Below are positions 14,766 to 37,625 of a DNA stretch of 64,000 nt, piece by piece. This stretch comes from Macrostomum hystrix. Its lineage: Eukaryota > Animalia > Platyhelminthes. Numbering within the stretch: the stretch's first letter is position 1; each line of letters begins with the position of its first letter. Position numbers and translations under genes: made by a program. The notes under the pieces were generated by a model that did no database searches, was not told where the DNA came from, and saw only the letters and a program-made list of their open reading frames with translations. Location of the stretch: assembly GCA_950097015.1 (NCBI GenBank), contig CATNEN010000027.1:744001-808000 (forward strand). The letters are read 5' to 3'.

Positions 14766-15744
14766 AGGAACCTTCGAATTCGGAGAATCTCGGCTTTGTT
14801 TTCAAACTGATTTAAAAAACATCATTTAGTACTGAGCGTTTCATAGGAAGTAGTAAGGAAAGGAAAAAATATAAGAATTCGATAATTTAATAACATCACC
14901 ACTTGTGTAAATTTATATTTCTGAAACTGCTTGCAATTTGGTTTTAATCAGTCTTATAAAAATTTGTTGTTGGTTCTGTGCTTTCTAACCGGTTGCTAAG
15001 GGTTAGCTACCTCTGACTGTTGCTAAGTAAATGACAACCACCTTCTAGTAGTTTATTTAACTAGCTTCTCGTTTCATTTTTCTGCAATGAAATAGTGCAC
15101 AAAATTAATAGGAGTGCAGGACACGGCGAGGCAGAGCACGCGGGCCGAAGCCAATCCAGTCTAAAAATACTATTAAAAAATCGTCCTACGCTCGTAGAAT
15201 TTCGCCTATCCGCTCTCGCATGCCTTCCCTCATCGTCCTTTCTTGCCCGATCTCTGCGAGGTATACGCTCAAGTTCCATTTGCACAAGGTCAGATAGCGT
15301 AAAAGCATAAAACACTGGCAATTCTCCCAAATGTTCCCTGCTCCCCTTGGGAAGACGAGCTGGGGATTTGGCAATTTTGGCAAGATGCTCAAATTGATAT
15401 GAAGAGGCCGATGAGAGCTTGTCGCAATTTTAAATAGTGAGTGAGCGGGGCACAGGAGCTTCGTCATACAGCCCTAGGCTTGCACTATACAATTGAGTTA
15501 CATTATATTTAGTGTTCAAACAATGCAAAGGCAAGGGTGATGCGAACAATTCGTGGAGGAAATGTTAAAAATAGGCTTCAATGAATGCATTTCTTTTTTG
15601 TACTTAAAAAAAAAATAACAGACAATTTTCATTGGAAAAAAACTATTTTACATACAACAGGTGAAGACTTAACAGAGTCTTTGAATCCTGTGAATTTCAT
15701 GCTTACACCTTGGGACATTGTTGAGGCTGGGGACTGAGACATCA

Positions 15745-18700
15745 ATGTGACTCACTTGGGACACCCTTGTTACTCACTTGAGACATCCTTGTGACTCACT
15801 TGGGACACCCTTGTGACTCACTTGGGACATCCTTGTGTCTCACTTGGGACACCCTTGTGACTCACTTGGGACATCCTTGTGACTCACTTGGGACACCCTT
15901 GTGACTCACTTGGGACATCCTTGTGACTCACTTGAGACATCCTTGTGTCTCACTTGGGACATCCTTGTGTCTCACTTGGGACACCCTTGTGTCTCACTTG
16001 GGACACCCTTGTGTCTCACTTGGGACACCCTTGTGTCTCACTTGAGACATCCTTGTGTCTCACTTGAGACATCCTTGTGTCTCACTTGGGACATCCTTGT
16101 TACTCACTTGAGACATCCTTGTGACTCACTTGGGACACCCTTGTGTCTCACTTGAGACATCCTTGTGTCTCACTTGGGACATCCTTGTTACTCACTTGAG
16201 ACATCCTTGTGTCTCACTTGAGACATCCTTGTGTCTCACTTGAGACATCCTTGTGTCCCACTTGAGACATCCTTGTGTCTCACTTGGGACACCCTTGTGT
16301 CTCACTTGAGACATCCTTGTGTCTCACTTGGGACATCCTTGTTACTCACTTGAGACATCCTTGTGTCTCACTTGGGACATCCTTGTTACTCACTTGAGAC
16401 ATCCTTGTGACTCACTTGGGACACCCTTGTGTCTCACTTGAGACATCCTTGTGTCTCACTTGGGACATCCTTGTTACTCACTTGAGACATCCTTGTGTCT
16501 CACTTGAGACATCCTTGTGTCTCACTTGAGACATCCTTGTGTCCCACTTGAGACATCCTTGTGTCTCACTTGGGACACCCTTGTGTCTCACTTGAGACAT
16601 CCTTGTGTCTCACTTGGGACATCCTTGTTACTCACTTGAGACATCCTTGTGTCTCACTTGGGACATCCTTGTTACTCACTTGAGACATCCTTGTGACTCA
16701 CTTGGGACACCCTTGTGTCTCACTTGAGACATCCTTGTGTCTCACTTGGGACATCCTTGTGTCTCACTTGGGACATCCTTGTGTCTCACTTGGGACATCC
16801 TTGTTACTCACTTGAGACATCCTTGTGTCTCACTTGGGACATCCTTGTGTCTCACTTGAGACATCCTTGTGTCTCACTTGAGACATCCTTGTGACTCACT
16901 TGGGACACCCTTGTGTCTCACTTGAGACACCCTTGTGTCTCACTTGAGACATCCTTGTGTCTCACTTGAGACATCCTTGTGTCTCACTTGAGACATCCTT
17001 GTGTCTCACTTGAGACATCCTTGTGTCTCACTTGAGACATCCTTGTGTCTCACTTGGGACACCCTTGTGTCTCACTTGAGACATCCTTGTGTCTCACTTG
17101 GGACATCCTTGTTACTCACTTGAGACATCCTTGTGTCTCACTTGAGACATCCTTGTGTCTCACTTGGGACATCCTTGTTACTCACTTGAGACATCCTTGT
17201 GACTCACTTGGGACACCCTTGTGTCTCACTTGAGACATCCTTGTGTCTCACTTGGGACATCCTTGTGTCTCACTTGGGACATCCTTGTTACTCACTTGAG
17301 ACATCCTTGTGTCTCACTTGAGACATCCTTGTGTCTCACTTGAGACATCCTTGTGTCTCACTTGAGACATCCTTGTGACTCACTTGGGACATCCTTGTGT
17401 CTCACTTGAGACACCCTTGTGTCTCACTTGAGACATCCTTGTGTCTCACTTGAGACATCCTTGTGTCTCACTTGGGACATCCTTGTGTCTCACTTGAGAC
17501 ATCCTTGTGTCTCACTTGAGACATCCTTGTGACTCACTTGGGACACCCTTGTGTCTCACTTGAGACACCCTTGTGTCTCACTTGAGACATCCTTGTGTCT
17601 CACTTGGGACATCCTTGTGTCTCACTTGAGACACCCTTGTGTCTCACTTGAGACATCCTTGTGTCTCACTTGAGACATCCTTGTGTCTCACTTGGGACAT
17701 CCTTGTGTCTCACTTGAGACATCCTTGTGTCTCACTTGGGACATCCTTGTGTCTCACTTGAGACATCCTTGTGTCTCACTTGGGACACCCTTGTGTCTCA
17801 CTTGGGACATCCTTGTGACTCACTTGGGACACCCTTGTGACTCAATTGGGACATCCTTGTGTCTCACTTGGGACACCCTTGTGTCTCACTTGGGACATCC
17901 TTGTGTCTCACTTGGGACACCCTTGTGTCTCACTTGGGACACCCTTGTGTCTCACTTGGGACACCCTTGTGTCTCACTTGGGACATCCTTGTGTCTCACT
18001 TGGGACACCCTTGTGTCTCACTTGGGACACCCTTGTGTCTCACTTGGGACACCCTTGTGTCTCACTTGGGACACCCTTGTGTCTCACTTGGGACACCCTT
18101 GTGTCTCACTTGGGACATCCTTGTGACTCACTTGGGACACCCTTGTGTCTCACTTGGGACACCCTTGTGTCTCACTTGGGACATCCTTGTGTCTCACTTG
18201 GGACACCCTTGTGTCTCACTTGGGACACCCTTGTGTCTCACTTGGGACACCCTTGTGTCTCACTTGGGACACCCTTGTGTCTCACTTGGGACACCCTTGT
18301 GTCTCACTTGGGACATCCTTGTGACTCACTTGGGACATCCTTGTGACTCACTTGGGACATCCTTGTGACTCACTTGGGACATCCTTGTGACTCACTTGGG
18401 ACATCCTTGTGACTCTATTGCGAAATTCTTGTTACTCACTTGAGACATCATTGTGACTCACTTGGGACACCCTTGTGTCTCACTTGGGACACCCTTGTGT
18501 CTCACTTGGGACACCCTTGTGTCTCAATTGGGACACCCTTGTGTCTCAATTGGGACATCCTTGTGACTCACTTGGGACACCCTTGTGTCTCACTTGGGAC
18601 ATCCTTGTGACTCACTTGGGACATCCTTGTGTCTCACTTGGGACACCCTTGTGACTCACTTGGGACACCCTTGTGTCTCACTTGGGACATCCTTGTGTCT

Positions 18701-18945
18701 CACTTGGGACATCCTTTGACTCACTTGAGACATCCTTGTGACTCACTTGGGACATCCTTGTGTCTCAATTGGGACACCCTTGTTACTCACTTGGGACATC
18801 CTTGTTACTCACTTGAGACACCCTTGTTACTCACTTGGGACACCCTTGTTACTCACTTGGGACATCCTTGTGTCTCTATTGGGAAATTCTTGTGACTCAC
18901 TTGGGACACCCTTGTGTCTCACTTGGGACATCCTTTGACTCATCC
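15745..18945. repeat. 22-bp minisatellite (TCACTTGGGACACCCTTGTGTC)n
   Basis: Direct reading; lies between the convergent nAChR and claudin-like 3-prime ends. Confidence 0.97.
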
Positions 18946-19181
18946 TTGGGATCCTTGGGACATCCTTCCAGTCTTGGACTAGTGACATAGTATAAAATGT
19001 GAACAATTAAACAGAGAATTCAAAATAGCAGGAAAAAAGGTTCGATTTGCTGAAAAGTGCGGGTGCTAGCTGAGAAATGGATCCAAATACCAGAATGCAG
19101 AGTGATGAGATTTCCATAATATTTTCCAGTCCTGGACATTCAGCATTTGTGATCGGTAGCAATCAGTGGTCCGTGCTCAGC

Positions 19182-19429
19182 TCACACAGTCTGACAGGAC
19201 TCAAGTTGAGCTGGCGGTCGCCTTGTTGCTGAGCGGGCGCAGCACAGCAGAGCGCAGGGTCGGCTGGTCTCTCGAACCAGATCGTCCAGCATCATACAGA
19301 GGGCCGAGGCCATCAGCAGTGCGGCGGCTGCCCAGCCCATCGCATAGCCGTAGCCGTATCGATGCGACTGCAGCAATAGTTTTTGCACAGCGTAAGGATA
19401 GACGCCAAGTGCTACTGTGGCTGACAATG
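19182..19429 (-). CDS. PMP22/claudin-superfamily protein, shared last exon (TM3 end, ECL2, TM4, tail)
   Basis: CCCCCAG|ALSATVALGVYPY...YGYGYAMGWAAAALLMASALCMML; (Y/F)G(Y/W)xYxxGW TM4 signature. Confidence 0.88.
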
Positions 19430-19745
19430 CTGGGGGTGGAATGAATTGCTGATGGAATGTGATCAGCGATTGACAAATTGTAACATGAGTCACATGTAAC
19501 CATGTCGGCTACTATGGTTGACTAAAAATATTCTATTGGACATATTTTTAATTTATACACTTTTAAACTGTAATGGGCAGTTAAAGTTCATTGTAAAGAG
19601 CGGAAAATTTGGATACGTTTGGTGGACTTTCATGAGAATCGGTCATTCGGTTTCGGAGCTATCGTGAAGTAGGCATTGGGGATTTGAAATACCCCCCAGG
19701 GAGAAAAATAGCTTGGCATTTCTTCTATTAAGCGATTATACTCAC

Positions 19746-19895
19746 CAGCCACAAAGAAGATTTCTCCAGCAGAGTGGAAATAGTACATCTTCTTTGGCAG
19801 GTAGTTGACGCACAGTCCAAATGAGGCCAGACCCGTGCCCAAAGCAGTAAACAGAATTGCAAAAATGAGCAGTCCGATAGAGGCCTTCTGCCAGT
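19746..19895 (-). CDS. PMP22/claudin-superfamily protein, shared exon (TM2-TM3)
   Basis: CTACCCAG|(D)WQKASIGLLIFAILFTALGTGLASFGLCVNYLPKKMYYFHSAGEIFFVA|GTGAGT; the WQ-TM2 pattern resembles TMEM47/VAB-9-type proteins. Confidence 0.88.
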
Positions 19896-20007
19896 CTGGG
19901 TAGGTTTAATAGGGCGCTGCAGGTGAGTTGATAGATATGACTTTGGGGTGCACAGCAGGTACAAATGTACTACTATTGATGACATCTCATTGACAGACCC
20001 GTTGAGA

Positions 20008-21900
20008 CTTATGATTGAGGATTTAGTTCGTGTTTTTAGTTCCCATTGTGTCTTATGAATGAGGATTTAGTTCGTGTTTTTAGTTCCCATTGTGTCTTAT
20101 GGCTGAGGATTTAGTTCGTGTTTTTCTCCCATTGTGTCTTATGGCTGAGGATTTAGTTCGTGTTTTTCTCCCATTGTGTCTTATGGCTGAGGATTTAGTT
20201 CGTGTTTTTCTCCCATTGTGTCTTATGGCTGAGGATTTAGTTCGTGTTTTTCTCCCATTGTGTCTTATGGCTGAGGATTTAGTTCGTGTTTTTCTCCCAT
20301 TGTGTCTTATGGTTGAGGATTTAGTTCGTGTTTTTAGTTCCCATTGTGTCTTATGGCTGAGGATTTAGTTCGTGTTTTTAGTTCCCATTGTGTCTTATGG
20401 CTGAGGATTTAGTTCGTGTTTTTAGTTCCCATTGTGTCTTATGAATGAGGATTTAGTTCGTGTTTTTAGTTCCCATTGTGTCTTATGGCTGAGGATTTAG
20501 TTCGTGTTTTTCTCCCATTGTGTCTTATGGCTGAGGATTTAGTTCGTGTTTTTCTCCCATTGTGTCTTATGGCTGAGGATTTAGTTCGTGTTTTTCTCCC
20601 ATTGTGTCTTATGAATGAGGATTTAGTTCGTGTTTTTCTCCCATTGTGTCTTATGGCTGAGGATTTAGTTCGTGTTTTTCTCCCATTGTGTCTTATGGCT
20701 GAGGATTTAGTTCGTGTTTTTCTCCCATTGTGTCTTATGGCTGAGGATTTAGTTCGTGTTTTTCTCCCATTGTGTCTTATGGCTGAGGATTTAGTTCGTG
20801 TTTTTCTCCCATTGTGTCTTATGGCTGAGGATTTAGTTCGTGTTTTTCTCCCATTGTGTCTTATGGCTGAGGATTTAGTTCGTGTTTTTCTCCCATTGTG
20901 TCTTATGGTTGAGGATTTAGTTCGTGTTTTTAGTTCCCATTGTGTCTTATGGCTGAGGATTTAGTTCGTGTTTTTAGTTCCCATTGTGTCTTATGGCTGA
21001 GGATTTAGTTCGTGTTTTTAGTTCCCATTGTGTCTTATGGCTGAGGATTTAGTTCGTGTTTTTAGTTCCCATTGTGTCTTATGAATGAGGATTTAGTTCG
21101 TGTTTTTAGTTCCCATTGTGTCTTATGAATGAGGATTTAGTTCGTGTTTTTAGTTCCCATTGTGTCTTATGGCTGAGGATTTAGTTCGTGTTTTTAGTTC
21201 CCAATGTGTCTTATGGCTGAGGATTTAGTTCGTGTTTTTAGTTCCCAATGTGTCTTATGGCTGAGGATTTAGTTCGTGTTTTTAGTTCCCATTGTGTCTT
21301 ATGGCTGAGGATTTAGTTCGTGTTTTTAGTTCCCATTGTGTCTTATGAATGAGGATTTAGTTCGTGTTTTTAGTTCCCATTGTGTCTTATGGCTGAGGAT
21401 TTAGTTCGTGTTTTTAGTTCCCATTGTGTCTTATGGCTGAGGATTTAGTTCGTGTTTTTAGTTCCCATTGTGTCTTATGAATGAGGATTTAATTCGTGTT
21501 TTTAGTTCCCAATGTGTCTTATGGCTGAGGATTTAGTTCGTGTTTTTAGTTCCCATTGTGTCTTATGAATGAGGATTTAGTTCGTGTTTTTAGTTCCCAT
21601 TGTGTCTTATGGCTGAGGATTTAGTTCGTGTTTTTAGTTCCCAATGTGTCTTATGGCTGAGGATTTAGTTCGTGTTTTTAGTTCCCATTGTGTCTTATGG
21701 CTGAGGATTTAGTTCGTGTTTTTAGTTCCCATTGTGTCTTATGGCTGAGGATTTAGTTCGTGTTTTTAGTTCCCATTGTGTCTTATGGCTGAGGATTTAG
21801 TTCGTGTTTTTAGTTCCCAATGTGTCTTATGGCTGAGGATTTAGTTCGTGTTTTTAGTTCCCATTGTGTGTTATGGGTGAGGATTTAGTTCGTGTTTTTA
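20008..21900. repeat. 42/44-bp minisatellite (TTATGGCTGAGGATTTAGTTCGTGTTTTT[C/AGT]TCCCATTGTGTC)n
   Basis: Direct reading; two length variants occur in blocks. Confidence 0.95.
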
Positions 21901-22246
21901 CATTTTCGAAGTACAAACGCAAGTTGAATAGACATCCTGTTAGTTACTCAACCTATGTACACATAGGCTGACAGCTCTAGCGGCGGAAGTTTAGCTAAGC
22001 CTTGGCCTACAGCTGATAGCTTGTCCAGCTAAATATGATTTATTGGTGCAATAAATGTCCACTGTGAGCTTGGAGACAGGAAGAATGATTAGACAACCCT
22101 TGCTGATCAGTGACGGGACACACGCGAGCTGAGTGATTTAATCAGCGTCAGCAACCTGCTCGAATGCAGGTAAAACTAGGTATTCTCGAGTCTGCTTCTC
22201 TTAGCAACTAAAAGTCTAGATTTTTTATGGAATGGTTCAATTAGAT

Positions 22247-22582
22247 ACGAGAGTAGATTAGATACGAGGGGAGATTAGATACGAGGGGAGATTAGATATG
22301 AGAGTATATTAGATATTAGAGTAGATTAGATACGAGAGTAGATTAGATACGAGAGTAGATTAGATACGAGGGGAGATTAGATATGAGAGTAGATTAGATA
22401 TGAGAGTATATTAGATATGAGAGTAGATTAGATATTAGAGTAGATTAGATACGAGAGTAGATTAGATACGAGGGGAGATTAGATATGAGAGTAGATTAGA
22501 TATGAGAGTATATTAGATATGAGAGTAGATTAGATATTAGAGTAGATTAGATATTAGAGTAGATTAGATATGAGAGTAGATT
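22247..22582. repeat. 17-bp minisatellite (ATTAGATACGAGAGTAG)n
   Basis: Direct reading. Confidence 0.9.
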
Positions 22583-22929
22583 GCAGTAGGGATAATAGGA
22601 ATCTAAACATCACAAGCCATAAACGCGCGCCAATCACAGAAGACACACGCACACACACTGGGATAGGAGACCGTCAGGAAAAGAAGCAGAGCGTATGCAA
22701 ATCGTCCAGATTGTTCAGGAATCAGAAAGGAAACTGAACTCTGCTTATTCAGCTGATTCACTTCCTCTATCACTGTGCGGGTTTCTCTGGTTCAATTGCT
22801 TTTACCTTGAATTTGCAAGGCTCCCGTGTCCACTGGCTCGCTGTCATACCCTCGTATTCTATACTCATTCTTGAGCACTTTTCGGCTCTCTATGACTCGG
22901 ATTCTGAGAACTCAAATATGCGGCCTTAT

Positions 22930-23276
22930 TCTCTCTCTATCCCTCTCGATCCCCTCTCTCTCTATCCCCTCTATCTCTATCCCCTCTCTCTATCCCCTCT
23001 CTCTATCCCCTCTCTCTCTATTCTCTCTCTCTATCCCCTCTCTCTCTATCCCCTCTCTCTCTATTCCCTCTCTCTCTATCCCCTCTCTCTCTATCCCCTC
23101 TATCTCTATCCCCTCTATCTCTATCCCCCCTCTCTCTATTCTCTCTCTCTATCCCCTCTATCTCTATCCCCTCTCTCTCTATCCCCTCTCTCTATCCCCT
23201 CTCTCACTATTTCCTCTCTCTCTATTCCCTCTCTCTCTATTCCCTCTCTCTCTATTCCCTCTCTCTCTATCCCCTC
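22930..23276. repeat. CT-rich repeat of about 15 bp (CTATCCCCTCTCTCT)n
   Basis: Direct reading; directly downstream of the module B donor. Confidence 0.85.
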
Positions 23277-23285
23277 TCCGTCTAC

Positions 23286-23643
23286 CTTGCAGGTGCTGCC
23301 CAAAAATGCCACCACCGCCGCCGCAGCCGCCGCTGTTGGCCTCGCTTAGATTCGTTCGCGACTGTCGCTGAATCGCTGAAGCGCCAGGTGGGCACGCGTC
23401 CCACAGGCTGGCCCAGGCGTCAACGCTGCCGCTGCCGCGCCAATGCCAGTGAGCGTCCGGCGCCAGCGCCGCCGTCAGCAGGCCGAGTGCGGCGCAGCCG
23501 AGCATGACGCCGAGGCAGCGCCAGGCAAGACGGCGACGCTCCTGGGCGCCGAAGGCTTCGCTGTGCGGCCGGCGCTGCTCGTAGATTCCGACGCTGTCGG
23601 GAACGCGGAAGCTGACGAAACTCTTCAGTGTCTTCAGCTGCAT
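23286..23643 (-). CDS. PMP22/claudin-superfamily protein, alternative variable module B (short N-terminus, TM1 and ECL1 in one exon)
   Basis: MQLKTLK...AWRCLGVMLGCAALGLLTAALAPDAHW...ASLWDAC...GGC...QHLQ ends at a phase-1 donor AAG|GTAGAC and joins the 19895 exon in frame. Isoform B = 251 aa. Confidence 0.72.
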
Positions 23644-23727
23644 GGCGTCACAGCCTGCGGTTTGCTCGTGACTCACGGCTGCTGCCTATAGAGCTGCCAC
23701 CCTGCCTATGCCACCCTGGCACTCTGG

Positions 23728-23950
23728 CAATCTATCAATCTGTCAATCTATCACTCTGTCAATCAATCACTCTGTCAATCTATCCTCTGTCAATCTATCA
23801 CTTTGTCAATCTATCCTCTGTCAATCTATCACTTACTTTGTCAATCTATCACTTTGTCAATCTATTACTTTGTCAATCTATCAATCTGTCAATCTATCAC
23901 TCTGTCAATCTATTTACCTGTCAATCTATCACTCTGTCAATCAATCTGTC
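23728..23950. repeat. Degenerate repeat of about 16 bp (TGTCAATCTATCACTC)n
   Basis: Direct reading. Confidence 0.8.
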
Positions 23951-24515
23951 ACTCAGCCACTCACCAGCCAGCTCTCCTAAGCACCTGATTCCTAGTATCT
24001 GTGAGTTCAGGCAGTCAGCTGAATGAATGTCGCTAAGCAGAGGTGCTTGAGAAGCAGCCAGAATTTCTAGCGAGTGTCGGCTGCGCGGTGAGAAAGAGAA
24101 ACGGGACAAGGCGGGGAGGGCCATCTCAGACAGCCAATTGAGGGCCTGGGAGATGTAGGGATTCCCTGTGCAGCGCCTCCATGCACCCTCCCTTCATTCA
24201 CTCCTGACCGTCTATTTCCTCTGCATCCTCAGTTTCCACGCTTCTCGCCATTCCCCAGTTCTGCTTTTTTAGGACCAAGCGAACAGGCAAGGCTTCAGAG
24301 CACCACACCGCGCCTTGTCTCTTTTCTGCCCCTATAGCCTTGCTAGCTTCCTTCATTTGCACTTCCCGTCTCTTGCGCCTTGTGCCTAGCCATGTGTTCT
24401 TTTTTAACTGCACTTTCCTGACGATTGCAGTTTCTGCAGCTTCACTCCAACATTGCCGCTAACAGGATCCAGGAATGCCTGAGCCGATACTGGGCCAGTT
24501 ATGACACTGTACTGA

Positions 24516-25702
24516 ACTGTTCTGTTCTGTTCTGTTCTGTTCTGTTCTGTTCTGTTCTGTTCTGTTCTGCTCTGTTCTGTTCTGTTCTGTTCTGTTCTGT
24601 TCTGCCCTGTTCTGTTCTGTTCTGTTCTGTTCTGCCCTGTTCTGTTCTGTTCTGCTCTGTTCTGTTCTGCTCTGCTCTGTTCTGTTCTGTTCTGTTCTGT
24701 TCTGTTCTGTTCTGTTCTGTTCTGTTCTGTTCTGTTCTGTTCTGTTCTGTTCTGTTCTGTTCTGTTCTGTTCTGTTCTGTTCTGTTCTGTTCTGTTCTGC
24801 TCTGTTCTGTTCTGCTCTGTTCTGTTCTGCTCTGTTCTGTTCTGCTCTGCTCTGTTCTGTTCTGTTCTGTTATGTTCTGTTCTGCTCTGCTCTGTTCTGT
24901 TCTGTTCTGTTCTGTTCTGTTCTGCTCTGTTCTGTTCTGCTCTGTTCTGTTCTGTTCTGTTCTGTTCTGTTCTGTTCTGTTCTGTTCTGTTCTGTTCTGT
25001 TCTGTTCTGTTCTGTTCTGTTCTGTTCTGTTCTGTTCTGCTCTGTTCTGTTCTGTTCTGTTCTGTTCTGCTCTGTTCTGTTCTGTTCTGTTCTGTTCTGT
25101 TCTGCTCTGTTCTGTTCTGTTCTGTTCTGTTCTGTTCTGTTCTGTTCTGTTCTGTTCTGTTCTGTTCTCTTCTGCTCTGTTCTGTTCTGTTCTGTTCTGT
25201 TCTGTTCTGTTCTGTTCTGCCCTGTTCTGTTCTGTTCTGTTCTGTTCTGTTCTGTTCTGTTCTGCCCTGTTCTGTTCTGCTCTGTTCTGCCCTGTTCTGT
25301 TCTGCCCTGTTCTGTTCTGTTCTGTTCTGCCCTGTTCTGTTCTGTTCTGTTCTGTTCTGTTCTGTTCTGCCCTGTTCTGTTCTGTTCTGTTCTGCTCTGT
25401 TCTGTTCTGTTCTGCTCTGTTCTGCCCTGTTCTGTTCTGTTCTGTTCTGTTCTGCCCTGTTCTGTTCTGTTCTGTTCTGTTCTGTTCTGTTCTGTTCTGC
25501 TCTGTTCTGCCCTGTTCTGTTCTGTTCTGTTCTGTTTTGTTCTGTTCTGCTCTGTTCTGTTCTGTTCTGTTCTGTTCTGTTCTGTTCTGTTCTGTTCTGT
25601 TCTGTTCTGTTCTGTTCTGTTCTGTTCTGCTCTGTTCTGCTCTGTTCTGCCCTGTTCTGTTCTGTTCTGTTCTGTTCTGTTCTGTTCTGCCCTGTTCTGC
25701 TC
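24516..25702. repeat. (TTCTG)n pentanucleotide array, copy 1
   Basis: Direct reading; variants CTCTG and CCCTG. Confidence 0.97.
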
Positions 25703-26111
25703 TGTGTGTTGAATCTACAATTCATAGAAAGTCTTCATTTATCTGTTAGATGATTTATAGATCAGCTCCGTGTAATGTTGCGCAGGAATTTTTCAAGAAT
25801 TGTTCAAAAATTTGCATTCAAATTTGAATTGCTAATTTTTGCTCACAATCGATTCCTTTGCAGACTAATCGTAGTAATTTAACCGTGCGCGTGCATTCGC
25901 ACAAGACTAGAACGCGTTTCATTATTCTAAACATTCGAGTTACATTTTTGAAACTACATTTATCGGATTTTAACTGCGCAATTTCATTACGCTACTTTTA
26001 GTAGAGAAGCATGTGGCATGCTTTGCAAGGAACGCTAGTACTCAGAAAAACACAATTAGACGATCGTAAGCTTTTTGTATTATCTTTATTTGGTTCATCA
26101 GTTATGAAGCA

Positions 26112-27350
26112 GACTGAGGACCATTTAGAGTGTCGTAGACTGAGGACCATTTAGAGTGTGGTAGAATGAGGACCATTTAGAGTATGGTAGACTGAGGACC
26201 ATTTAGAGTATGGTAGAATGAGGACCATTTAGAGTATGGTAGACTGAGGACCATTTAGAGTATGGTAGACTGAGGACCATTTAGAGTGTCGTAGAATGAG
26301 GACCATTTAGAGTGTCGTAGACTGAGGACCATTTAGAGTGTGGTAGAATGAGGACCATTTAGAGTGTGGTAGAATGAGGACCATTTAGAGTGTGGTAGAC
26401 TGAGGACCATTTAGAGTGTGGTAGACTGAGGACCATTTAGAGTATGGTAGAATGAGGACCATTTAGAGTGTGGTAGACTGAGGACCATTTAGAGTGTCGT
26501 AGACTGAGGACCATTTAGAGTGTGGTAGAATGAGGACCATTTAGAGTGTCGTAGACTGAGGACCATTTAGAGTATGGTAGACTGAGGACCATTTAGAGTG
26601 TGGTAAACTGAGGACCATTTAGAGTGTGGTAGAATGAGGACCATTTAGAGTGTGGTACGCTGAGGACCATAGAGTATGGTAGAATGAGGACCATTTAGAG
26701 TGTGGTAGAATGAGGACCATTTAGAGTGTGGTAGACTGAGGACCATTTAGAGTGTGGTACGCTGAGGACCATAGAGTATGGTAGACTGAGGACCATAGAG
26801 TATGGTAGACTGAGGACCATTTAGAGTGTGGTAAACTGAGGACCATTTAGAGTGTGGTAGACTGAGGACCATTTAGAGTGTGGTAGAATGAGGACCATTT
26901 AGAGTGTGGTACGCTGAGGACCATAGAGTATGGTAGACTGAGGACCATAGAGTATGGTAGACTGAGGACCATTAAGAGTGTCGTAGACTGAGGACCATTT
27001 AGAGTGTGGTAGAATGAGGACCATTTAGAGTGTGGTAGAATGAGGACCATTTAGAGTGTGGTAGAATGAGGACCATTTAGAGTGTGGTAGAATGAGGACC
27101 ATTTAGAGTGTGGTAGAATGAGGACCATTTAGAGTGTGGTAGACTGAGGACCATTTAGAGTGTGGTAGACTGAGGACCATTTAGAGTGTGGTAGAATGAG
27201 GACCATTCAGAGTGTGGTACGCTGAGGACCATAGAGTATGGTAGACTGAGGACCATAGAGTATGGTAGACTGAAGACCATAGATGAGGACCACAGAGTAT
27301 GGTAGACTGAGGAACATAGAGTGTGGCAGACTGAGGATCACAGAGTATAA
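26112..27350. repeat. 26-bp minisatellite (GAGGACCATTTAGAGTGTGGTAGACT)n with a 24-bp variant
   Basis: Direct reading. Confidence 0.95.
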
Positions 27351-27406
27351 TAAACTGCAGAGCTATTAGTTCAGCATCACAAGTATTGCAAGAACTGCAA
27401 GCTCAC

Positions 27407-27511
27407 CTTTTCCATCTTGATGCAAATTGGTGGAGCCAAAGTTGCCAACGCAGGTGCCGTTGACTATGTAGCAGGTCTGCCACAGGCCGGACCGAACCCA
27501 GGTGCCGTTGC
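27407..27511 (-). CDS. PMP22/claudin-superfamily protein, module A exon 2 (ECL1)
   Basis: AAGCAG|GNGTWVRSGLWQTCYIVNGTCVGNFGSTNLHQDGK|GTGAGC; claudin-family GLW-x2-C...C signature; phase 1 at both ends. Confidence 0.88.
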
Positions 27512-27699
27512 CTGCTTGAAATGAACGGTTTACCTAACTACACTACTTTTCATCATCGGGTAGTAAAGGACGTACACATTACTTACTTTTTTAAATACAT
27601 TTTGTTGAAGAATTTCAACTGAACATGTAAAAAATGTCATGATTTTCTGTCTCATTTATTACAGCAACTTATTATCGATTCCACATCAATTGGTACATA

Positions 27700-29155
27700 T
27701 TCTTATCGATTTCTCATCGATTGCGACATATTCTCATCGATTTCTCATCGATTGCGACATATTCTCATCGATTTCTCATCGATTGGTACATATTCTCATA
27801 GATTTCTCATCGATTGGTACATATTCTCATAGATTTCTCATCGATTGGTACATATTCTCATCGATTTCTCATCGATTGCGACATATTCTCATCGATTTCT
27901 CATCGATTGCGACATATTCTCATCGATTTCTCATCGATTAGTACATATTCTTATCGATTTCTCATCGATTGCGACATATTCTCATCGATTTCTCATCGAT
28001 TGGTACATATTCTCATCGATGGTACACATTCTCATCGATGGTACACATTCTCATCGATGGGTACACATTCTCATCGATGGTACACATTCTCATCGATGGG
28101 TACAGATTCTCATCGATGGGTACAGATTCTCATCGATTGTATACATTCTCATCGATGGGTACACATTCTCATCGATGGTACACATTCTCATCGATGGGTA
28201 CAGATTCTCATCGATGGTACACATTCTCATCGATGGGTACACATTCACATCGATTTTACACATTCTCATCGATGGGTACAGATTCTCATCGATGGTACAC
28301 ATTCTCATCGATGGGTACAGATTCTCATCGATGGTACACATTCTCATCGATGGGTACAGATTCTCATCGATGGTACACATTCTCATCGATGGGTACAGAT
28401 TCTCATCGATGGGTACAGATTCTCATCGATGGTACACATTCTCATCGATGGGTACAGATTCTCATCGATGGTACACATTCTCATCGATGGTACACATTCT
28501 CATCGATGGGTACACATTCTCATCGATGGTACACATTCTCATCGATAGTACACATTCTCATCGATGGGTACAGATTCTCATCGATGGTACACATTCTCAT
28601 CGATGGGTACAGATTCTCATCGATGGTACACATTCTCATCGATGGGTACAGATTCTCATCGATGGTACACATTCTCATCGATGGGTACAGATTCTCATCG
28701 ATGGGTACAGATTCTCATCGATGGTACACATTCTCATCGATGGGTACAGATTCTCATCGATGGTACACATTCTCATCGATGGTACACATTCTCATCGATG
28801 GGTACACATTCTCATCGATGGTACACATTCTCATCGATAGTACACATTCTCATCGATGGTACACATTCTCATCGATGGGTACAGATTCTCATCGATGGTA
28901 CACATTCTCATCGATAGTACACATTCTCATCGATGGGTACACATTCTCATCGATGGGTACAGATTCTCATCGATGGGTACAGATTCTCATCGATGGGTAC
29001 ACATTCTCATCGATAGTACACATTCTCATCGATGGGTACACATTCTCATCGATGGGTACAGATTCTCATCGATGGGTACAGATTCTCATCGATGGGTACA
29101 CATTCTCATCGATTTGTCATCGATGGGTACACATTCTCATCGATTTGTCATCGAT
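27700..29155. repeat. 19/20-bp minisatellite (GGTACACATTCTCATCGAT)n
   Basis: Direct reading; an ATCGAT palindrome in each unit. Confidence 0.95.
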
Positions 29156-29299
29156 CGCTTTATATTCGCAATGCTTCCTGTGTAAAAATATCTCAAAAAA
29201 GTTTCTTTACGAAACGAACAACAGTCAGTTTTTTTAAATTCCCCATTGCACTCGGATGCACTTTCATCAGTCTGCAGTCGTTACACTGAAATCCTTCAC

Positions 29300-29450
29300 T
29301 TGAAACCTTGTTCTTAAGTGCAATTAGTGACATAGACGCTGACCCAACAACCTCCCCCACCGCTTTGGGAAGGCCTCCCGCAGGGATTCGAACCGCCACT
29401 TCACCCTGCAGCCAGACCCACACCCTAGGCTGAAGCAGAGTTGCTGTCCT
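29300..29450 (-). mobile_element. Possible tRNA-derived (Pol III) repeat fragment
   Basis: Perfect B box GGTTCGAATCCC on the - strand at 29383-29394; no convincing A box or cloverleaf. Confidence 0.25.
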
Positions 29451-29834
29451 CATCGAGTTTCTATTCCTTGAGCTTCCACTTCTCTCCAGCTCCTCTAGAA
29501 AATTCTTTTTTTATAGAAAACTTTTTTTCTGCTGCTCAAAAGTTGCCAGACAGAAATTGAGACGAGAAACGGGATCCGTTTGGTAGGACCTGGCAAGGGA
29601 TTTTTTTAGCATGTAATAAAATAGTAGTGGATATTTCGTATTTTTTTATGAAGGGCCGAATTCTCCAAACACTTCAACTGAATTCGAATGAACATTGAAT
29701 TTTAAAGCAATTTTGCCCTTAGTCTCTGAATTATTCACCCCACTTCCAAAAATACCGCTGCGTTTTCTTATTATCAAATTTATTCAAAATATTACGCTAC
29801 GGCCTCAAATTATCACCCCACAGCTTCATTAAAA

Positions 29835-29995
29835 TACCCCAGAAAGTTTCCCAATTATCCCCTAAAGTTTCCCAATTATCCAATAAAGTTTCCCAATTAT
29901 CCCAAAGGGTTTCCCAATTATCCCATAAAGTTTCCCAATTATCCCATAAAGTTTCCCACTTATCCCATAAAGGGAGACTTAATTATCCCTACAGT
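29835..29995. repeat. 21-bp minisatellite (TCCCATAAAGTTTCCCAATTA)n
   Basis: Direct reading. Confidence 0.85.
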
Positions 29996-30122
29996 TTCGG
30001 GGCATTTAAAAAAATTGCAACCGTTAAAAATTATCGAAAATTATTTTAAAATCCCTTCAGCTGTGCTCATATTCCCCAGTTACAAAGTTATCCCATAAGT
30101 TGCTGAGCGATCTCCAACTCAC

Positions 30123-31044
30123 CAAACGAGTGATGCGACCAGGAAGCGGTGGACAGGCACACCAGCAGGCAGGGCACGGCAAGGCCGGACATCACGGCGG
30201 CCGCCGTGCGGCTTCGAACGAATGTCGGATGCTCCCAGTAGGCCCGAAGCCGGTTCCACTGGCTGCGGCTCAGCTCCTGAGCCAGGCTGCCAGCGAAGCT
30301 CACCTTCGACCTGCGACCGCCGACCACGCCGACGCCGCCGCTTAAGCCGACGCTTGGGGCGCCGGCGGCCCGGCTTCGTCGCTGCTGATGCTGCTGGCGC
30401 AGGTGCAGCCGCTGACGCTCCGGCGCTAGAAGGCCCGCGCATTCTTGGCGCGCCTTCAGGATCGGTGTCGACAAGCGCGCTTCCGCCTGCTCTGCGGCCT
30501 CCTCTTCTACGGCCACCGCCGCCTCCTCTTCGGCTGCGGCATCCGCCACCGCCGCCGCTGCTGCCGCCGCCGCAGCCGCCGCCGCGTCAGCTGTTGAAGA
30601 GCACGAATCGTCGCGGGATGAATCCGGCTTCAGCCGCACCTGCCGCACCCGACGCTGCTGCAGGGAGACTCGTCTGTCACGTGACCACCGCGACCAGGCT
30701 GACGAACTGCTTGCGGCGGCCGCTTCAGCTGGCGACCTCAGCTGCAGAGTCGACGGCCGGCCGCTGGGAGACAACGGCGGCTGCTGCAGCGGCTGGGCCT
30801 CCTCGACGGAGGCTCCGCGTATCGGCGAAGTTGACGGCGAGATTTCTAGGCTACTGCCCAGGCCTGTGTCGCCACTGCTCTGCTGCCACGGTTGAGCCGC
30901 AGTGGAAACAGCCGACGACGCATCCGCTGTGGTACCGTGGACACCGACGTCACCGTAGCCGCTGCGCGCTCTGAATCGGCACTGCCGGGTTCGGGCCACT
31001 GACGCCTGGGGCACGCCTAGCAGGCCGGCCGATTCTTCAGCCAT
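30123..31044 (-). CDS. PMP22/claudin-superfamily protein, variable module A exon 1 (long low-complexity N-terminus plus TM1)
   Basis: 307 codons ending in TM1 TAAAVMSGLAVPCLLVCLSTASW at a phase-1 donor G|GTGAGT. Isoform A join(31044..30123,27511..27407,19895..19746,19429..19182) = 474 aa. Confidence 0.8.
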
Positions 31045-31134
31045 CGGATCTTCATGGTGACGAAAAATTTTGAGACAAATTAGTTCATTGTGAGTAAACC
31101 CTCACACTGAGAGTTGGACTCAGAGACATTTGCA

Positions 31135-31400
31135 GTGAGGGAGTGACTGAGTGACTGAGTGACAGAGTGACAGATTGAGGGAGTGACTGAGCGAGTAAGA
31201 GAGAGACGGAGTGACAGAGAGACGGAGAGGCTGAGTGACAGTGAGGGAGTGACGGAGTGACAGAGAGAGAGTGACGGAGTGAGAGTGAGGGAGTGACGGA
31301 GTGACAGAGAGAGAGTGACGGAGTGAGAGTGAGGGAGTGACGGAGTGACAGAGAGAGAGTGACGGAGTGACAGTGAGGGAGTGACGCAGTGACAGAGTGA
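31135..31400. repeat. GA-rich degenerate repeat (GAGTGAC-based)
   Basis: Direct reading. Confidence 0.8.
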
Positions 31401-31830: not shown

Positions 31831-32106
31831 CTGTAGTGGGACGTCAGGCCACAGGCTTCTCTTGATCACTCAGAGACAGGGAGATGAAGGAGTGGCTCGA
31901 GGCTCCAGATTAAAAAGTGACGGGAAAGAACGGCGGAACCCAGCAGCATAAATCATTTCAGCGGACAGCACAGATCCCAGCTTTTGCTTGGAAATCCTCA
32001 GCACTTATCTGGGATCTGAGATTCGTTTCTAGCCGAGCCACATTTTAGGAGAACCATTAGTTGCACGAATGAGTTCTCATCTCAGCGGTTGGAGATGCGA
32101 GAACTC

Positions 32107-33297
32107 CGTTCTGTTCTGTTCTGTTCTGTTCTGTTCTGTTCTGTTCTGTTCTGTTCTGTTCTGTTCTGTTCTGTTCTGTTCTGTTCTGTTCTGTTCTGTT
32201 CTGTTCTGTTCTGCTCTGTTCTGTTCTGCTCTGTTCTGCTCTGTTCTGTTCTGCTCTGCTCTTCTGTTCTGTTCTGTTCTGTTCTGTTCTGCTCTGTTCT
32301 GTTCTGCTCTGCTCTGTTCTGTTCTGTTCTGCTCTGTTCTGTTCTGTTCTGTTCTGTCCTGTTCTGTTCTGCTCTGTTCTGTTCTGTTCTGCTCTGTTCT
32401 GTTCTGTTCTGCTCTGTTCTGTTCTGTTCTGTCCTGTTCTGTTCTGCTCTGCTCTGTTCTGTTCTGTTCTGTTCTGTTCTGTTCTGTTCTGTTCTGTTCT
32501 GTTCTGTTCTGTTCTGTTCTGTTCTGTTCTGTTCTGTTCTGTTCTGTTCTGTTCTGTTCTGTTCTGTTCTGTTCTGTTCTGTTCTGTTCTGTTCTGCTCT
32601 GCTCTGTTCTGTTCTGTTCTGTTCTGTTCTGTTCTGTTCTGCTCTGTTCTGTTCTGCTCTGTTCTGCTCTGTTCTGTTCTGCTCTGCTCTTCTGTTCTGT
32701 TCTGTTCTGTTCTGTTCTGCTCTGTTCTGTTCTGCTCTGCTCTGTTCTGTTCTGTTCTGCTCTGTTCTGTTCTGTTCTGTTCTGTCCTGTTCTGTTCTGC
32801 TCTGTTCTGTTCTGTTCTGCTCTGTTCTGTTCTGTTCTGCTCTGTTCTGTTCTGTTCTGTCCTGTTCTGTTCTGCTCTGCTCTGTTCTGTTCTGTTCTGT
32901 TCTGTTCTGTTCTGTTCTGTTCTGCTCTGTTCTGTTCTGTTCTGTTCTGCTCTGTTCTGTTCTGTTCTGTTCTGTTCTGTTCTGTTCTGTCCTGTTCTGT
33001 TCTGCTCTGTTCTGTTCTGCTCTGCTCTGTTCTGCTCTGCTCTGTTCTGTTCTGTTCTGTTCTGCTCTGTTCTGTTCTGTTCTGTTCTGTTCTGTTCTGT
33101 CCTGTTCTGTTCTGCTCTGTTCTGCTCTGTTCTGTTCTGTTCTGTTCTGTTCTGTTCTGTTCTGTTCTGTTCTGTTCTGTCCTGTTCTGTTCTGCTCTGT
33201 TCTGTTCTGTTCTGTTCTGTTCTGTTCTGCTCTGTTCTGTTCTGTTCTGTTCTGTTCTGTTCTGTTCTGTTCTGTTCTGTTCTGTTCTGTTCTGTTC
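32107..33297. repeat. (TTCTG)n pentanucleotide array, copy 2
   Basis: Direct reading; same orientation as copy 1. Confidence 0.97.
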
Positions 33298-34047
33298 TTT
33301 TCTGTCACCTCGGTTTCATGAAAAATAATTACATTTACTAATTATCTGCCCTTGTCCATTTTGCAATGAATATTTTATGAAATCAATAGTTAAAAATATT
33401 AGTGAGAGATTCTTCAATTTTGAAATTTCGGTGCATTCCAAGCTCCAAAAGAGAGGCTATTTTTAGAAGCCCATATTGATGCAGCTCCTCCGTTTCCCCA
33501 GCCTCCAGCTGTCGTGTCTCATGCCATCATCCTTAGAGTGTGATGTGACACAGCCGCGCCGAGAAATGCAGATTGAAAACCTCCATGGTGCGTGGCAGCG
33601 TGACGTGAGGCAATTTTCTGTTTTTTCTGTTTATTTTCTTAAATGACGCCACTCCAGGCTCCCCTTCTCTCTTCCCTGTTCCTGACAGAACAGCTAGCAG
33701 CAGAACACTTTTGTCTCTTAAGAATGCTGCCTGAATTTTGAGAGCTCAGCCGCCTTCTGTGCCTAGAATTGCAACATTCCACCGTCATTCACCGTCTTAT
33801 CGACCTGTCCCATTCAGTTCACTGCCAGCCCGCCTTTGCGAAACAGCCCGCAAGTTTCCGATGACAGCCTCAACCAACTTGATGAATGGACGGGCGCTAC
33901 TGGCTTAAACTCCATATTGCTCTCACCATAGCAGAACAGCGCCACTTTCGCTGCTTGAACTCAAACTGTCTGCTCAACTTTATTCCACCTTCTCTGTACT
34001 GTGCGTGCGCTCTCTCAATATATTCAGCTGTTTCTCCTTTCATTTAT

Positions 34048-37000
34048 CAGTCTCCCTCAGTCTCCTCAGTCTCCCTCAGTCTCCCTCAGTCTCTCTCAGT
34101 CTCCCTCACTCTCAGTCTCTCTCAGTCTCTCTCATGCGTCCCTCAGTCTCCCTCAGTCTCCCTCAGTCTCTCAGTCTCCCTCAGTCTCCCTCAGTCTCTC
34201 TCAGTCTCTCTCAGTCTCCCTCAGTCTCTCTCAGTCTCCCTCAGTCTCCCTCAGTCTCTCTCAGTCTCTCTCAGTCTCCCTCAGTCTCCCTCAGTCTCCC
34301 TCAGTCTCTCTCAGTCTCCCTCACTCTCAGTCTCCCTCACTCTCAGTCTCCCTCACTCTCAGTCTCCCTCACTCTCAGTCTCTCTTAATCTCTCTCAGTT
34401 TCTCTCAGTCTCCCCCAGTCTCTCTCAGTCTCTCTCAGTTTCTCTCAGTCTCCCTCAGTCTCTCTTAATCTCTCTCAGTCTCTCTCAGTCTCTCTCAGTC
34501 TCCCTCAGTCTCCCTCAGTCTCTCTCAGTCTCCCCCAGTCTCTCTCAGTCTCCCTCAGTCTCTCTTAATCTCTCTCAGTCTCTCTCAGTTTCTCTCAGTC
34601 TCCCTTAATCTCTCTCAGTCTCTCTCAGTCTCTCTCAGTTTCTCTCAGTCTCCCCCAGTCTCTCTCAGTCTCTCTCAGTTTCTCTCAGTCTCCCTCAGTC
34701 TCTCTTAATCTCTCTCAGTCTCTCAGTCTCTCTCAGTCTCTCTCAGTCTCTCTCAGTCTCCCTCAGTCTCCCTCAGTCTCCCTCAGTCTCCCTCAGTCTC
34801 CCTCAGTCTCTCTTAATCTCTCTCAGTCTCTCTCAGTTTCTCTCAGTCTCTCTCAGTCTCTCTTAATCTCTCTCAGTTTCTCTCAGTCTCTCTCAGTCTC
34901 TCTCAGTCTCTCTCAGTCTCTCTCAGTCTCCCCCAGTCTCTCTCAGTCTCTCTCAGTCTCTCTTAATCTCTCTCAGTCTCTCTCAGTCTCTCCCAGTCTC
35001 CCTCAGTCTCCCTCAGTCTCTCTCAGTCTCTCTCAGTCTCTCTCAGTCTCTCTCAGTCTCTCTCAGTCTCCCCCAGTCTCTCTCAGTCTCCCTCAGTCTC
35101 TCTTAATCTCTCTCAGTCTCTCTCAGTTTCTCTCAGTCTCCCTTAATCTCTCTCAGTCTCTCTCAGTCTCTCTCAGTTTCTCTCAGTCTCCCCCAGTCTC
35201 CCTCAGTCTCTCTCAGTCTCTCTCAGTCTCTCTCAGTCTCTCAGTCTCTCTCAGTCTCTCTCAGTCTCTCTCAGTCTCCCTCAGTCTCCCTCAGTCTCTC
35301 TCAGTCTCTCTCAGTCTCTCTCAGTCTCTCTCAGTCTCCCTCAGTCTCTCTCAGTCTCTCTCAGTCTCTCCCTCAGTCTCTCTCAGTCTCCCCCAGTCTC
35401 TTAGTCTCTCTCAGTCTCTCTCAGTTTCTCTCAGTCTCCCTCAGTCTCTCTCAGTCTCCCTCAGTCTCCCTCAATCTCTCTCAGTCTCCCTCAAACTCTC
35501 TCAGTCTCTCTCAGTCTCTCTCAGTCTCCCTCAGTCTCTCTCAGTCTCCCTCAGTCTCTCTCAGTCTCTCTCAGTCTCCCCCAGTCTCTTAGTCTCTCTT
35601 GATCTCTCTCAGTCTCTCTCAGTCTCTCTCAGTCTCCCTCAGTCTCCCTCAGTCTCCCTCAGTCTCTCTCAGTCTCCCTCACTCTCAGTCTCCCTCACTC
35701 TCAGTCTCCCTCACTCTCAGTCTCCCTCACTCTCAGTCTCTCTTAATCTCTCTCAGTTTCTCTCAGTCTCCCCCAGTCTCTCTCAGTCTCTCTCAGTTTC
35801 TCTCAGTCTCCCTCAGTCTCTCTTAATCTCTCTCAGTCTCTCTCAGTCTCTCTCAGTCTCCCTCAGTCTCCCTCAGTCTCTCTCAGTCTCCCCCAGTCTC
35901 TCTCAGTCTCCCTCAGTCTCTCTTAATCTCTCTCAGTCTCTCTCAGTTTCTCTCAGTCTCCCTTAATCTCTCTCAGTCTCTCTCAGTCTCTCTCAGTTTC
36001 TCTCAGTCTCCCCCAGTCTCTCTCAGTCTCTCTCAGTTTCTCTCAGTCTCCCTCAGTCTCTCTTAATCTCTCTCAGTCTCTCAGTCTCTCTCAGTCTCTC
36101 TCAGTCTCTCTCAGTCTCCCTCAGTCTCCCTCAGTCTCCCTCAGTCTCCCTCAGTCTCCCTCAGTCTCTCTTAATCTCTCTCAGTCTCTCTCAGTTTCTC
36201 TCAGTCTCTCTCAGTCTCTCTTAATCTCTCTCAGTTTCTCTCAGTCTCTCTCAGTCTCTCTCAGTCTCTCTCAGTCTCTCTCAGTCTCCCCAAGTCTCTC
36301 TCAGTCTCTCTCAGTCTCTCTTAATCTCTCTCAGTCTCTCTCAGTCTCTCCCAGTCTCCCTCAGTCTCCCTCAGTCTCTCTCAATCTCTATCAGTCTCTC
36401 TCAGTCTCTCTCAGTCTCTCTCAGTCTCCCCCAGTCTCTCTCAGTCTCCCTCAGTCTCTCTTAATCTCTCTCAGTCTCTCTCAGTTTCTCTCAGTCTCCC
36501 TTAATCTCTCTCAGTCTCTCTCAGTCTCTCTCAGTTTCTCTCAGTCTCCCCCAGTCTCCCTCAGTCTCTCTCAGTCTCTCTCAGTCTCTCTCAGTCTCTC
36601 AGTCTCTCTCAGTCTCTCTCAGTCTCTCTCAGTCTCCCTCAGTCTCCCTCAGTCTCTCTCAGTCTCTCTCAGTCTCTCTCAGTCTCTCTCAGTCTCCCTC
36701 AGTCTCTCTCAGTCTCTCTCAGTCTCTCCCTCAGTCTCTCTCAGTCTCCCCCAGTCTCTTAGTCTCTCTCAGTCTCTCTCAGTTTCTCTCAGTCTCCCTC
36801 AGTCTCTCTCAGTCTCCCTCAGTCTCCCTCAATCTCTCTCAGTCTCCCTCAAACTCTCTCAGTCTCTCTCAGTCTCTCTCAGTCTCCCTCAGTCTCTCTC
36901 AGTCTCCCTCAGTCTCTCTCAGTCTCTCTCAGTCTCCCCCAGTCTCTTAGTCTCTCTTGATCTCTCTCAGTCTCCCTCAGTCTCCCTCAGTCTCTCTCAG

Positions 37001-37625
37001 TCTCCCTCAATCTCCCTCAGTCTCCCTCAGTCTCCCTCAGTCTCCCTCAGTCTCCCTCAATCTCTCTCAGTCTCCCTCAATCTCTCTCAGTCTCCCTCAG
37101 TCTCTCTCAGTCTCCCTCAGTCTCTCTCAGTCTCTCTCAGTCTCCCTCAGTCTCTCTCAGTCTCTCTCAGTCTCTCTCAGTCTCCCTCAGTCTCTCTCAG
37201 TCTCTCTCAGTCTCTCTCAGTCTCTCAGTCTCCCTCAGTCTCCCTCAGTCTCCCTCAGTCTCTCTCAGTCTCTCTCAGTCTCTCTCAGTCTCTCTCAGTC
37301 TCCCTCAGTCTCTCTCAGTCTCCCTCAGTCTCCCTCAGTCTCTCTCAGTCTCTCTCAGTCTCTCTCAGTCTCTCTCAGTCTCCCTCAGTCTCCCTCAGTC
37401 TCTCTCAGTCTCTCTCAGTCTCTCTCAGTCTCTCTCAGTCTCTCTCAGTCTCTCTCAGTCTCCCTCAGTCTCTCTCAGTCTCTCTCAGTCTCTCTCAGTC
37501 TCCCTCAGTCTCTCTCAGTCTCCCTCAGTCTCCCTCAGTCTCTCTCAGTCTCTCTCAGTCTCTCTCAGTCTCTCAGTCTCCCTCAGTCTCCCTCAGTCTC
37601 CCTTAGTCTCTCTCAGTCTCTCTCT
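34048..37625 (+). repeat. 10-bp minisatellite (TCAGTCTCYC)n containing a 1358-bp internal tandem duplication
   Basis: Direct reading; rare variants recur at a 1358-nt offset. Confidence 0.95.

Follow-up and report, generated by a model that had tools for sequence, protein, structure and literature searches.

Exons 1a and 1b of CLDN10 give rise to claudin-10a and claudin-10b, and the exchange of the first transmembrane segment (TM1) and the first extracellular loop (ECL1) between these proteins reverses charge selectivity (PMC6862131). A gene of similar layout is found in the flatworm Macrostomum hystrix. It occupies positions 19182-31044, minus strand, of the 64,000-nucleotide stretch analyzed here (the window), which places it at about 763,182-775,044 of contig C27. 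This gene has two front modules, A and B, on one back half that encodes the remaining transmembrane segments (TM2-TM4), a design that is already known from CLDN10 and CLDN18. We consider it likely that the locus is one gene, which makes a canonical mRNA from exons A1, A2, C1, and C2 and an alternative short form, B-C1-C2, that begins in exon B at a start codon of its own.

Exon organization and splicing of the long form

Exon boundaries were read directly in the DNA, and each exon was translated separately. The coding exons are as follows, with a slash marking each exon boundary.

31044-30123, minus strand: exon A1, start codon, 307 codons plus 1 nt; donor G/GTGAGT, phase 1
27511-27407, minus strand: exon A2, 105 nt; acceptor CAG/, donor G/GTGAGC, phase 1 in and out
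23643-23286, minus strand: exon B, ATG, 119 codons plus 1 nt; donor G/GTAGAC, phase 1
19895-19746, minus strand: exon C1, acceptor CAG/, donor G/GTGAGT, phase 1 in and out
19429-19182, minus strand: exon C2, acceptor CCCCCAG/, phase 1 start; stop codon TGA at 19184-19182

The joins from A2 to C1 and from B to C1 are both in frame, and each reads ...-D-WQKA. By arithmetic, the A form is 474 amino acids (aa) long and the B form 251 aa. An exon-by-exon scan located one hydrophobic stretch each in A1, in B, in C1 (TM2, followed at the exon end by the first part of TM3), and in C2 (TM4). When all six frames of the whole 64-kb window were scanned, the motif [GSA][LIVM]W-x2-C had just two open-frame occurrences, one in A2 and one in B. 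The original prediction for this stretch had described two units, each consisting of TM1 and the loop signature W...(G/S)LW-x2-C...C, that end at phase-1 donors and join the exon at 19895 as ...-DWQKA to give products of 474 and 251 aa. The boundary reading, the motif scan, and the exon arithmetic bear out this description.

Module A begins with a cytoplasmic N-terminus of about 275 aa and low complexity, encoded by A1, which continues through TM1 (residues 278-302) to the first W of ECL1. Conserved short motifs in A1 are SSGDTGLG, SAWSRWSRDRR, STPILKARQE, and QWNRLRAYWEHPTF. Exon A2 supplies the remainder of the long-form ECL1, including N-G-T, SGLWQTC, and NGTC. The complete loop of this form is 43 aa long and carries two conserved N-x-T sequons for N-glycosylation. 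Module B has its own ATG, a 45-aa cytoplasmic tail, TM1 (residues 39-64), and a glycine-rich ECL1 (W...SLWDAC...C) that is longer than that of the A form and has no sequon. In the back half, C1 encodes the end of ECL1 (D-WQKA), TM2, a short cytoplasmic loop (YLPKKMYYFHSAGE), and the start of TM3. Exon C2 adds the rest of TM3, the second extracellular loop (ECL2; YPY...YGYGY), TM4, a tail with LDDLVRE, and a cysteine-rich C-terminus ending in -QTV. The C1>C2 join fits homologs without gaps.

A second copy of C1 or C2 was sought between A2 and B and across the window, and none was found. The interval between A2 and B contains minisatellites only, so that module A lacks a separate back half. No further front module was found upstream of the gene, between 31 and 64 kb of the window. 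An Rfam scan of 19000-31200 also gave no match.

Direct evidence for splicing comes from two small public sequencing runs, X1 and X2, each consisting of about 50 Mb of Logan contigs with the library type unrecorded. The contigs were compared with window positions 19000-20050, an interval that contains C1 and C2. One X1 contig of 301 nt (record 5) spans C1 from 19746 to 19897 without a mismatch and then continues for 149 nt. The first 30 letters of this overhang match the window uniquely at 27409-27438, the end of A2, and the letters CT at the joint are compatible with either side. The contig thus crosses the junction 27407>19895, which has canonical GT-AG splice sites, and skips 7.5 kb of DNA that includes B. 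The overhang exceeds A2 and extends about 46 nt past the A2 acceptor. Because A2 and C1 are each single-copy in the 220-Mb genome, the contig represents spliced RNA, and a DNA retrocopy is ruled out as its source. A long mRNA that skips B therefore exists. This contig also argues against splicing of module A to exons other than C1 and C2.

The 3' part of C2 and the 3' untranslated region are covered by contigs of both runs (19000-19347 in X1 and 19027-19295 in X2), and no contig in the compared interval crosses the C1>C2 joint. Record 5, the sole contig over C1, begins exactly at the last base of the exon (19746), at the C1 donor. In a k-mer assembly, such a start suggests a fork, for example between spliced C2 and a retained intron, or another 3' exon.

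Paralogs and homologs

The M. hystrix genome holds four copies of this gene, here called C27 (the copy in the window), C7 (C7:10,724,800-10,733,480), C38, and C5. Exons A1, A2, C1, and C2 are present with identical phases in all four, and each A1-type exon encodes the juxtamembrane motif QW.RL..(Y/F)W(E/Q)HP.F together with TM1. A1 of the window is homologous to the A1-type exons of its three paralogs. The presence of the A form in every copy indicates that the long form is canonical for the family. Residues N1, T3, SGLW, C13, N17, and C20 of A2 are invariant across the paralogs. The identity of C1 is 63-71% with the C7 and C38 copies and 47% with the C5 copy.

Exon B is present in two of the four paralogs, C27 and C7. 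The C7 exon is located between A2 and C1 and has an ATG, an intact open reading frame (ORF) of 115 codons, and an in-frame stop 11 codons upstream. Its phase-1 donor, G/GTAGCG, has the same unusual GTAG as exon B of the window. The signature W...(G/S)LW-x2-C...C of ECL1 is found in both modules and does not vary among the four A2 exons or between the two B exons. No B-type exon was found in the C38 and C5 paralogs, and the A2-C1 intron of C5 measures only about 75 nt. In C38, the corresponding intron (L021:5650-6286) contains a long tandem array that stays open for 255 aa in the reading frame of A2 and is translated as GVLRKG(L/M/V)LTD repeats. This array is probably another minisatellite and not coding.

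Separate trees of the C1 and C2 exons group the four Macrostomum copies as a single clade, with Shimodaira-Hasegawa-like approximate likelihood ratio test (SH-aLRT) support of 98 for C1 and 95 for C2. In both trees the B-bearing copies, C27 and C7, are not sisters. Since both module types are older than the Macrostomum clade, the simplest history is that the ancestor already carried both modules ahead of a single back half, and that this design, predating the four paralogs, kept B in C27 and C7 and lost it in C38 and C5.

A profile of the four C2 exons was searched against a large collection of proteins and contigs and gave 37 matches. Homologs of the constant half (E 1e-37 to 1e-4 with this profile) include Macrostomum lignano A0A1I8GV57 and A0A1I8F356, Tubulanus LOC141908815, Dreissena LOC127881489, Owenia CAH1775399, Lingula LOC106174080, Paralvinella LSH36_798g01048, an unnamed Candidula product, and Logan and JGI contigs. 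These spiralian homologs are also homologous to an A-type or a B-type front, and they have in common the motifs WQ(K/N)A, YY.HS.GE, YG.GYGLGW, and LDDLVRE. The closest database relatives are proteins of M. lignano. All named matches of the search are uncharacterized spiralian proteins, and in the sources found there is no description of two front modules on one back half for them. When the constant part of P0025 was used for a word search, no more than five proteins were returned, with no pair of RefSeq isoforms among them. Word searches for relatives with A1 and with B found none.

Both front types can be followed into molluscs. A1 shows homology to A-type N-termini of molluscs (BLASTP E 2e-14). 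For B, homology to mollusc forms covers the tail and TM1 (E 2e-6 with Dreissena, 1e-5 with P0007), and the N-terminus of B is homologous to short forms of molluscs and of one annelid. For P0007 (225 aa) and P0034 (221 aa), the encoding contigs show a short ORF that opens at its own ATG, situated two and six codons, respectively, after an in-frame stop, and that has no A-type coding sequence upstream of it. Within Macrostomum, the M. lignano gene model A0A1I8GV57 (P0001) consists of a B-type exon, C1, and C2 in order and is 86-96% identical to the C7 copy.

A small ECL1 exon (SGIWDLC...C) was observed at L025:15024-15092 of Paralvinella palmiformis JAODUP010000798.1, where it precedes C1 by about 700 nt. 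The annotated 252-aa model, P0039, lacks this exon and goes from TM1 straight to DWQNAV.

Exon B and the proposed short form

If the locus works as we propose, the canonical mRNA would encode a long disordered cytoplasmic N-terminus, TM1, the 43-aa ECL1, and TM2-TM4, and exon B, lying in the A2-C1 intron, would act as a second 5' coding exon. Spliced in phase 1 to the same C1 acceptor, B would give the short form. Both proteins would have TM2-TM4, ECL2, and the -QTV end in common and would differ in the cytoplasmic N-terminus, TM1, and ECL1, as claudin-10a and claudin-10b do. The short mRNA would most likely start at an internal transcription start upstream of B, which we take as the default route. 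The original prediction of a variable/constant system is borne out in part, for the placement of two modules on one half and for the A2>C1 junction. Exon B is under coding constraint, and the M. lignano model joins a C7-type B exon to C1 and C2. For M. hystrix, we infer the B>C1 product from conservation.

Several observations weigh against a short form in M. hystrix. Of the two junctions by which the original prediction could be checked, 27407>19895 was recovered, but no contig of X1 or X2 within 19000-20050 carries 23286>19895, and the sole X1 contig that crosses the C1 acceptor derives from A2. The sample consists of two small contig-only runs of unrecorded library type, compared with 19000-20050. 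The B donor, GTAGAC, deviates from the GT[G/A]AG consensus reported for M. lignano. Between the paralogs, the ratio of nonsynonymous to synonymous change (dN/dS) is 0.64 for B and therefore looser than for C1 (0.14) or C2 (0.26); that of A2 is 0.26. The M. lignano model A0A1I8GV57 is that of a C7-type paralog and not of the C27 gene. Outside flatworms, only one front type was found within reach at each of two loci. The locus of the annelid Paralvinella has the B type, with no A-type exon within 10 kb upstream of the gene. The locus of the snail Candidula has the A type, with no B-type exon in its A2-C1 intron, and a weak tblastn match at L026:49678 that was considered as a Candidula B exon is spurious.

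One explanation for such observations is that B is an unused relic in the C27 copy, that only the long A form is made, and that the ORF is intact by chance or because use was lost recently. The origin of the only C1 junction in A2, the nonconsensus donor, and the relatively high dN/dS are consistent with this explanation, and the loss of B from two of four paralogs demonstrates that loss occurs in the family. However, the 119-codon ORF of B has kept its ATG, phase-1 donor, transmembrane segment, and all motif residues. Synonymous sites between the paralogs are saturated (dS about 1.4 in C1 and C2), and yet B can still be aligned with its C7 counterpart, with 42% of residues in common, including W66, W77, LWDAC, and C107, which argues that B is not neutral. 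Furthermore, B has a GC content of 0.68, and of 0.78 at third codon positions (GC3), within AT-rich introns (GC 0.40-0.44), the unusual GTAG donor is also retained in C7, and the M. lignano model uses the C7-type exon. Judged by these features, B appears to be under coding constraint and not a relic, and we regard an unused B exon as unlikely.

The short segment that precedes the ATG of B bears on how the short mRNA could begin.

23654-23688, minus strand: region just upstream of the B ATG, with an in-frame TAG and candidate acceptors for cis splicing or for spliced-leader (SL) trans-splicing

The TAG is located at 23688-23686, 15 codons upstream of the ATG. Three AGs (exon starts 23681, 23678, and 23654) can be read in frame from a phase-1 donor. 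All are within 45 nt of the ATG and are preceded by poor pyrimidine tracts.

Trans-splicing of an SL is common in Macrostomum (PMC8629364, PMC10468722), and the choice between forms might be made at this step. A pre-mRNA from the A promoter would either be cis-spliced from A2 to C1 or receive the SL at an AG upstream of the B ATG. An SL is added to transcripts of about 20% of the genes in M. hystrix and 30% in M. lignano, multiple SL sites occur in 0.2-1% of M. hystrix genes (PMC10468722, PMC8629364), and several AGs lie no more than 45 nt upstream of the B ATG. In contrast, the YTNCAG motif reported for Macrostomum SL acceptors is absent just upstream of this ATG, so that no AG there is in the typical context, and the pyrimidine tracts are poor. 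The 5' extension of A0A1I8GV57 is colinear with the genomic DNA upstream of B and does not match an SL, a feature that may reflect model building. On balance, we doubt that an SL addition is the source of the short form and favor the internal start.

The AGs upstream of B also bear on whether the exon could be internal. The original prediction had excluded B as a cassette after A on the ground that reading from the second A exon into B meets a stop within about 13 codons. The three in-frame AGs contradict this argument, and the exclusion does not follow from reading frame. A cassette is instead disfavored because the added fifth transmembrane segment, by making their number odd, would invert TM2-TM4, and because the X1 contig skips B. 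A related scheme would place B after part of A1, such that the tail is shared and only TM1 and ECL1 are exchanged. The Dreissena polymorpha RefSeq model XP_052285350 (P0017) could be read in this manner, since an A1-type tail up to the FWEH motif is joined at residues about 380-400 to a B-type segment starting MKSFLKFK. This join is either a mis-joined model or a genuine third module combination. In Macrostomum, however, a single continuous exon encodes both the A tail and TM1, and no plausible GT[G/A]AG donor separates the two. Short forms elsewhere open at an ATG of their own that follows in-frame stops, and the in-frame TAG precedes the B ATG in the window as well. We therefore consider an internal B exon, in either arrangement, very improbable, and retain B as a self-starting first exon.

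The introns of the gene are largely filled by minisatellite arrays with periods of 8-44 bp and up to 119 copies. Together with a dispersed repeat, they are located as follows.

20008-21900, no strand assigned: 44-bp minisatellite, 43.7 copies, in the B-C1 intron
22240-22582, 22930-23278, 23720-23946, 24517-25705, 26111-27280, and 27674-29155: other intronic minisatellite arrays, seven in all with 20008-21900
19610-19690, no strand assigned: dispersed repeat of about 70-80 bp in the C1-C2 intron, outside the gene product

Arrays of this kind are also present on either side of the gene (15700-19000 and 32000-38900), and the arrays create long spurious ORFs on both strands. The dispersed repeat has more than 1000 first-look candidates genome-wide, with 87-93% identity. 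Short deep contigs at 19620-19675 in both runs (depth 112-199) are explained by this repeat, and a small RNA of this gene at that position is ruled out.

Family membership and comparison with described systems

Membership in the PMP22/EMP/MP20/claudin superfamily is secure through full-length homologs. Scored exon by exon against Pfam PF00822 (PMP22_Claudin), every exon falls below the gathering score, the best being B with 12 bits (E 0.2), whereas 8 of 10 full-length homologs exceed it (35-58 bits versus 26.7). A family profile built from eleven homologs matched PDB entries for MP20/LIM2 (4e-9), claudin-15 (3e-8), claudin-19 (1.5e-7), and TARP gamma-3 (4e-5). These matches span the whole four-transmembrane domain. 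'Isoform A2 of Claudin-18' is also among the PDB matches. PDB profile searches with single-exon alignments returned noise only. An AlphaFold2 model of the M. lignano B-type protein (predicted local distance difference test, pLDDT, 73.9; predicted template modeling score, pTM, 0.71) has four long helices and strands in ECL1. Its top Foldseek matches are claudin-3, -4, -15, and -19, TARPs, and MP20, all with probability 1.00. For MP20 and the TARPs, the TM-score by target is 0.66-0.77 at 15-21% identity.

With the MP20/LIM2, PMP22/EMP, and TARP (CACNG) proteins, the flatworm product has in common four transmembrane helices and the beta-sheet of ECL1, and MP20 is the best solved profile match. 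To our knowledge, no long N-terminal cytoplasmic domain and no pair of alternative N-terminal modules is known from these branches. The gene belongs to an uncharacterized, so far spiralian-only branch of the superfamily that is orthologous to no vertebrate claudin. This branch is without a database name, and both of its module types are conserved across phyla. The family can be defined by PF00822 together with a long N-terminal tail carrying SAW.(K/R)WS..RR, TP..KAR.E, and FW.H..F, and a clean annotation is now available for the four M. hystrix genes. For a genus that serves as a transgenic model, the locus raises the question of whether the two forms are placed in different cells or junctions, and of whether a promoter or an SL makes the switch.

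A bolder proposal is that the pair of front modules is ancient and spiralian-wide. An undescribed clade of the superfamily would then combine in one gene a "signaling-tailed" tetraspan, which bears a disordered tail with four conserved short motifs, and a "bare," self-starting one. The two would have different outer loops and would predate the split between flatworms and molluscs, and the switch in Macrostomum could be made by SL trans-splicing into the intron. We put this forward tentatively and hold it to be improbable as a whole.

The likeness to claudins extends to the same fold and the same W...GLW-x2-C...C loop. The C-terminus differs, as the flatworm protein ends in -CQTV and not in the -YV of classic tight-junction claudins, and its homologs have a terminal -V or -I preceded by H, Q, T, or R. 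The -CQTV end is a possible PDZ ligand.

The closest comparison is with CLDN10, in which two 5' coding modules have their own start codons, each encodes TM1 and most of ECL1, and both are joined to one shared exon set (PMC6862131). The A1 and A2 isoforms of CLDN18 can be likened to the flatworm forms in the same way. The original prediction of a candidate undescribed system was thus overstated, since the design is of the CLDN10 exon 1a/1b type (PMC6862131). The flatworm locus has the gene design that in vertebrates turns claudin-10 from an anion pore into a cation pore. Unlike in CLDN10, module A is split into two exons and has a disordered tail of about 275 aa with short motifs, whereas module B is a single exon with a 45-aa tail. 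This contrast in tail length indicates that the flatworm isoforms would differ far more on the cytoplasmic side than the CLDN10 isoforms do. A further difference from CLDN10 is that both flatworm module types are conserved between flatworms and molluscs.

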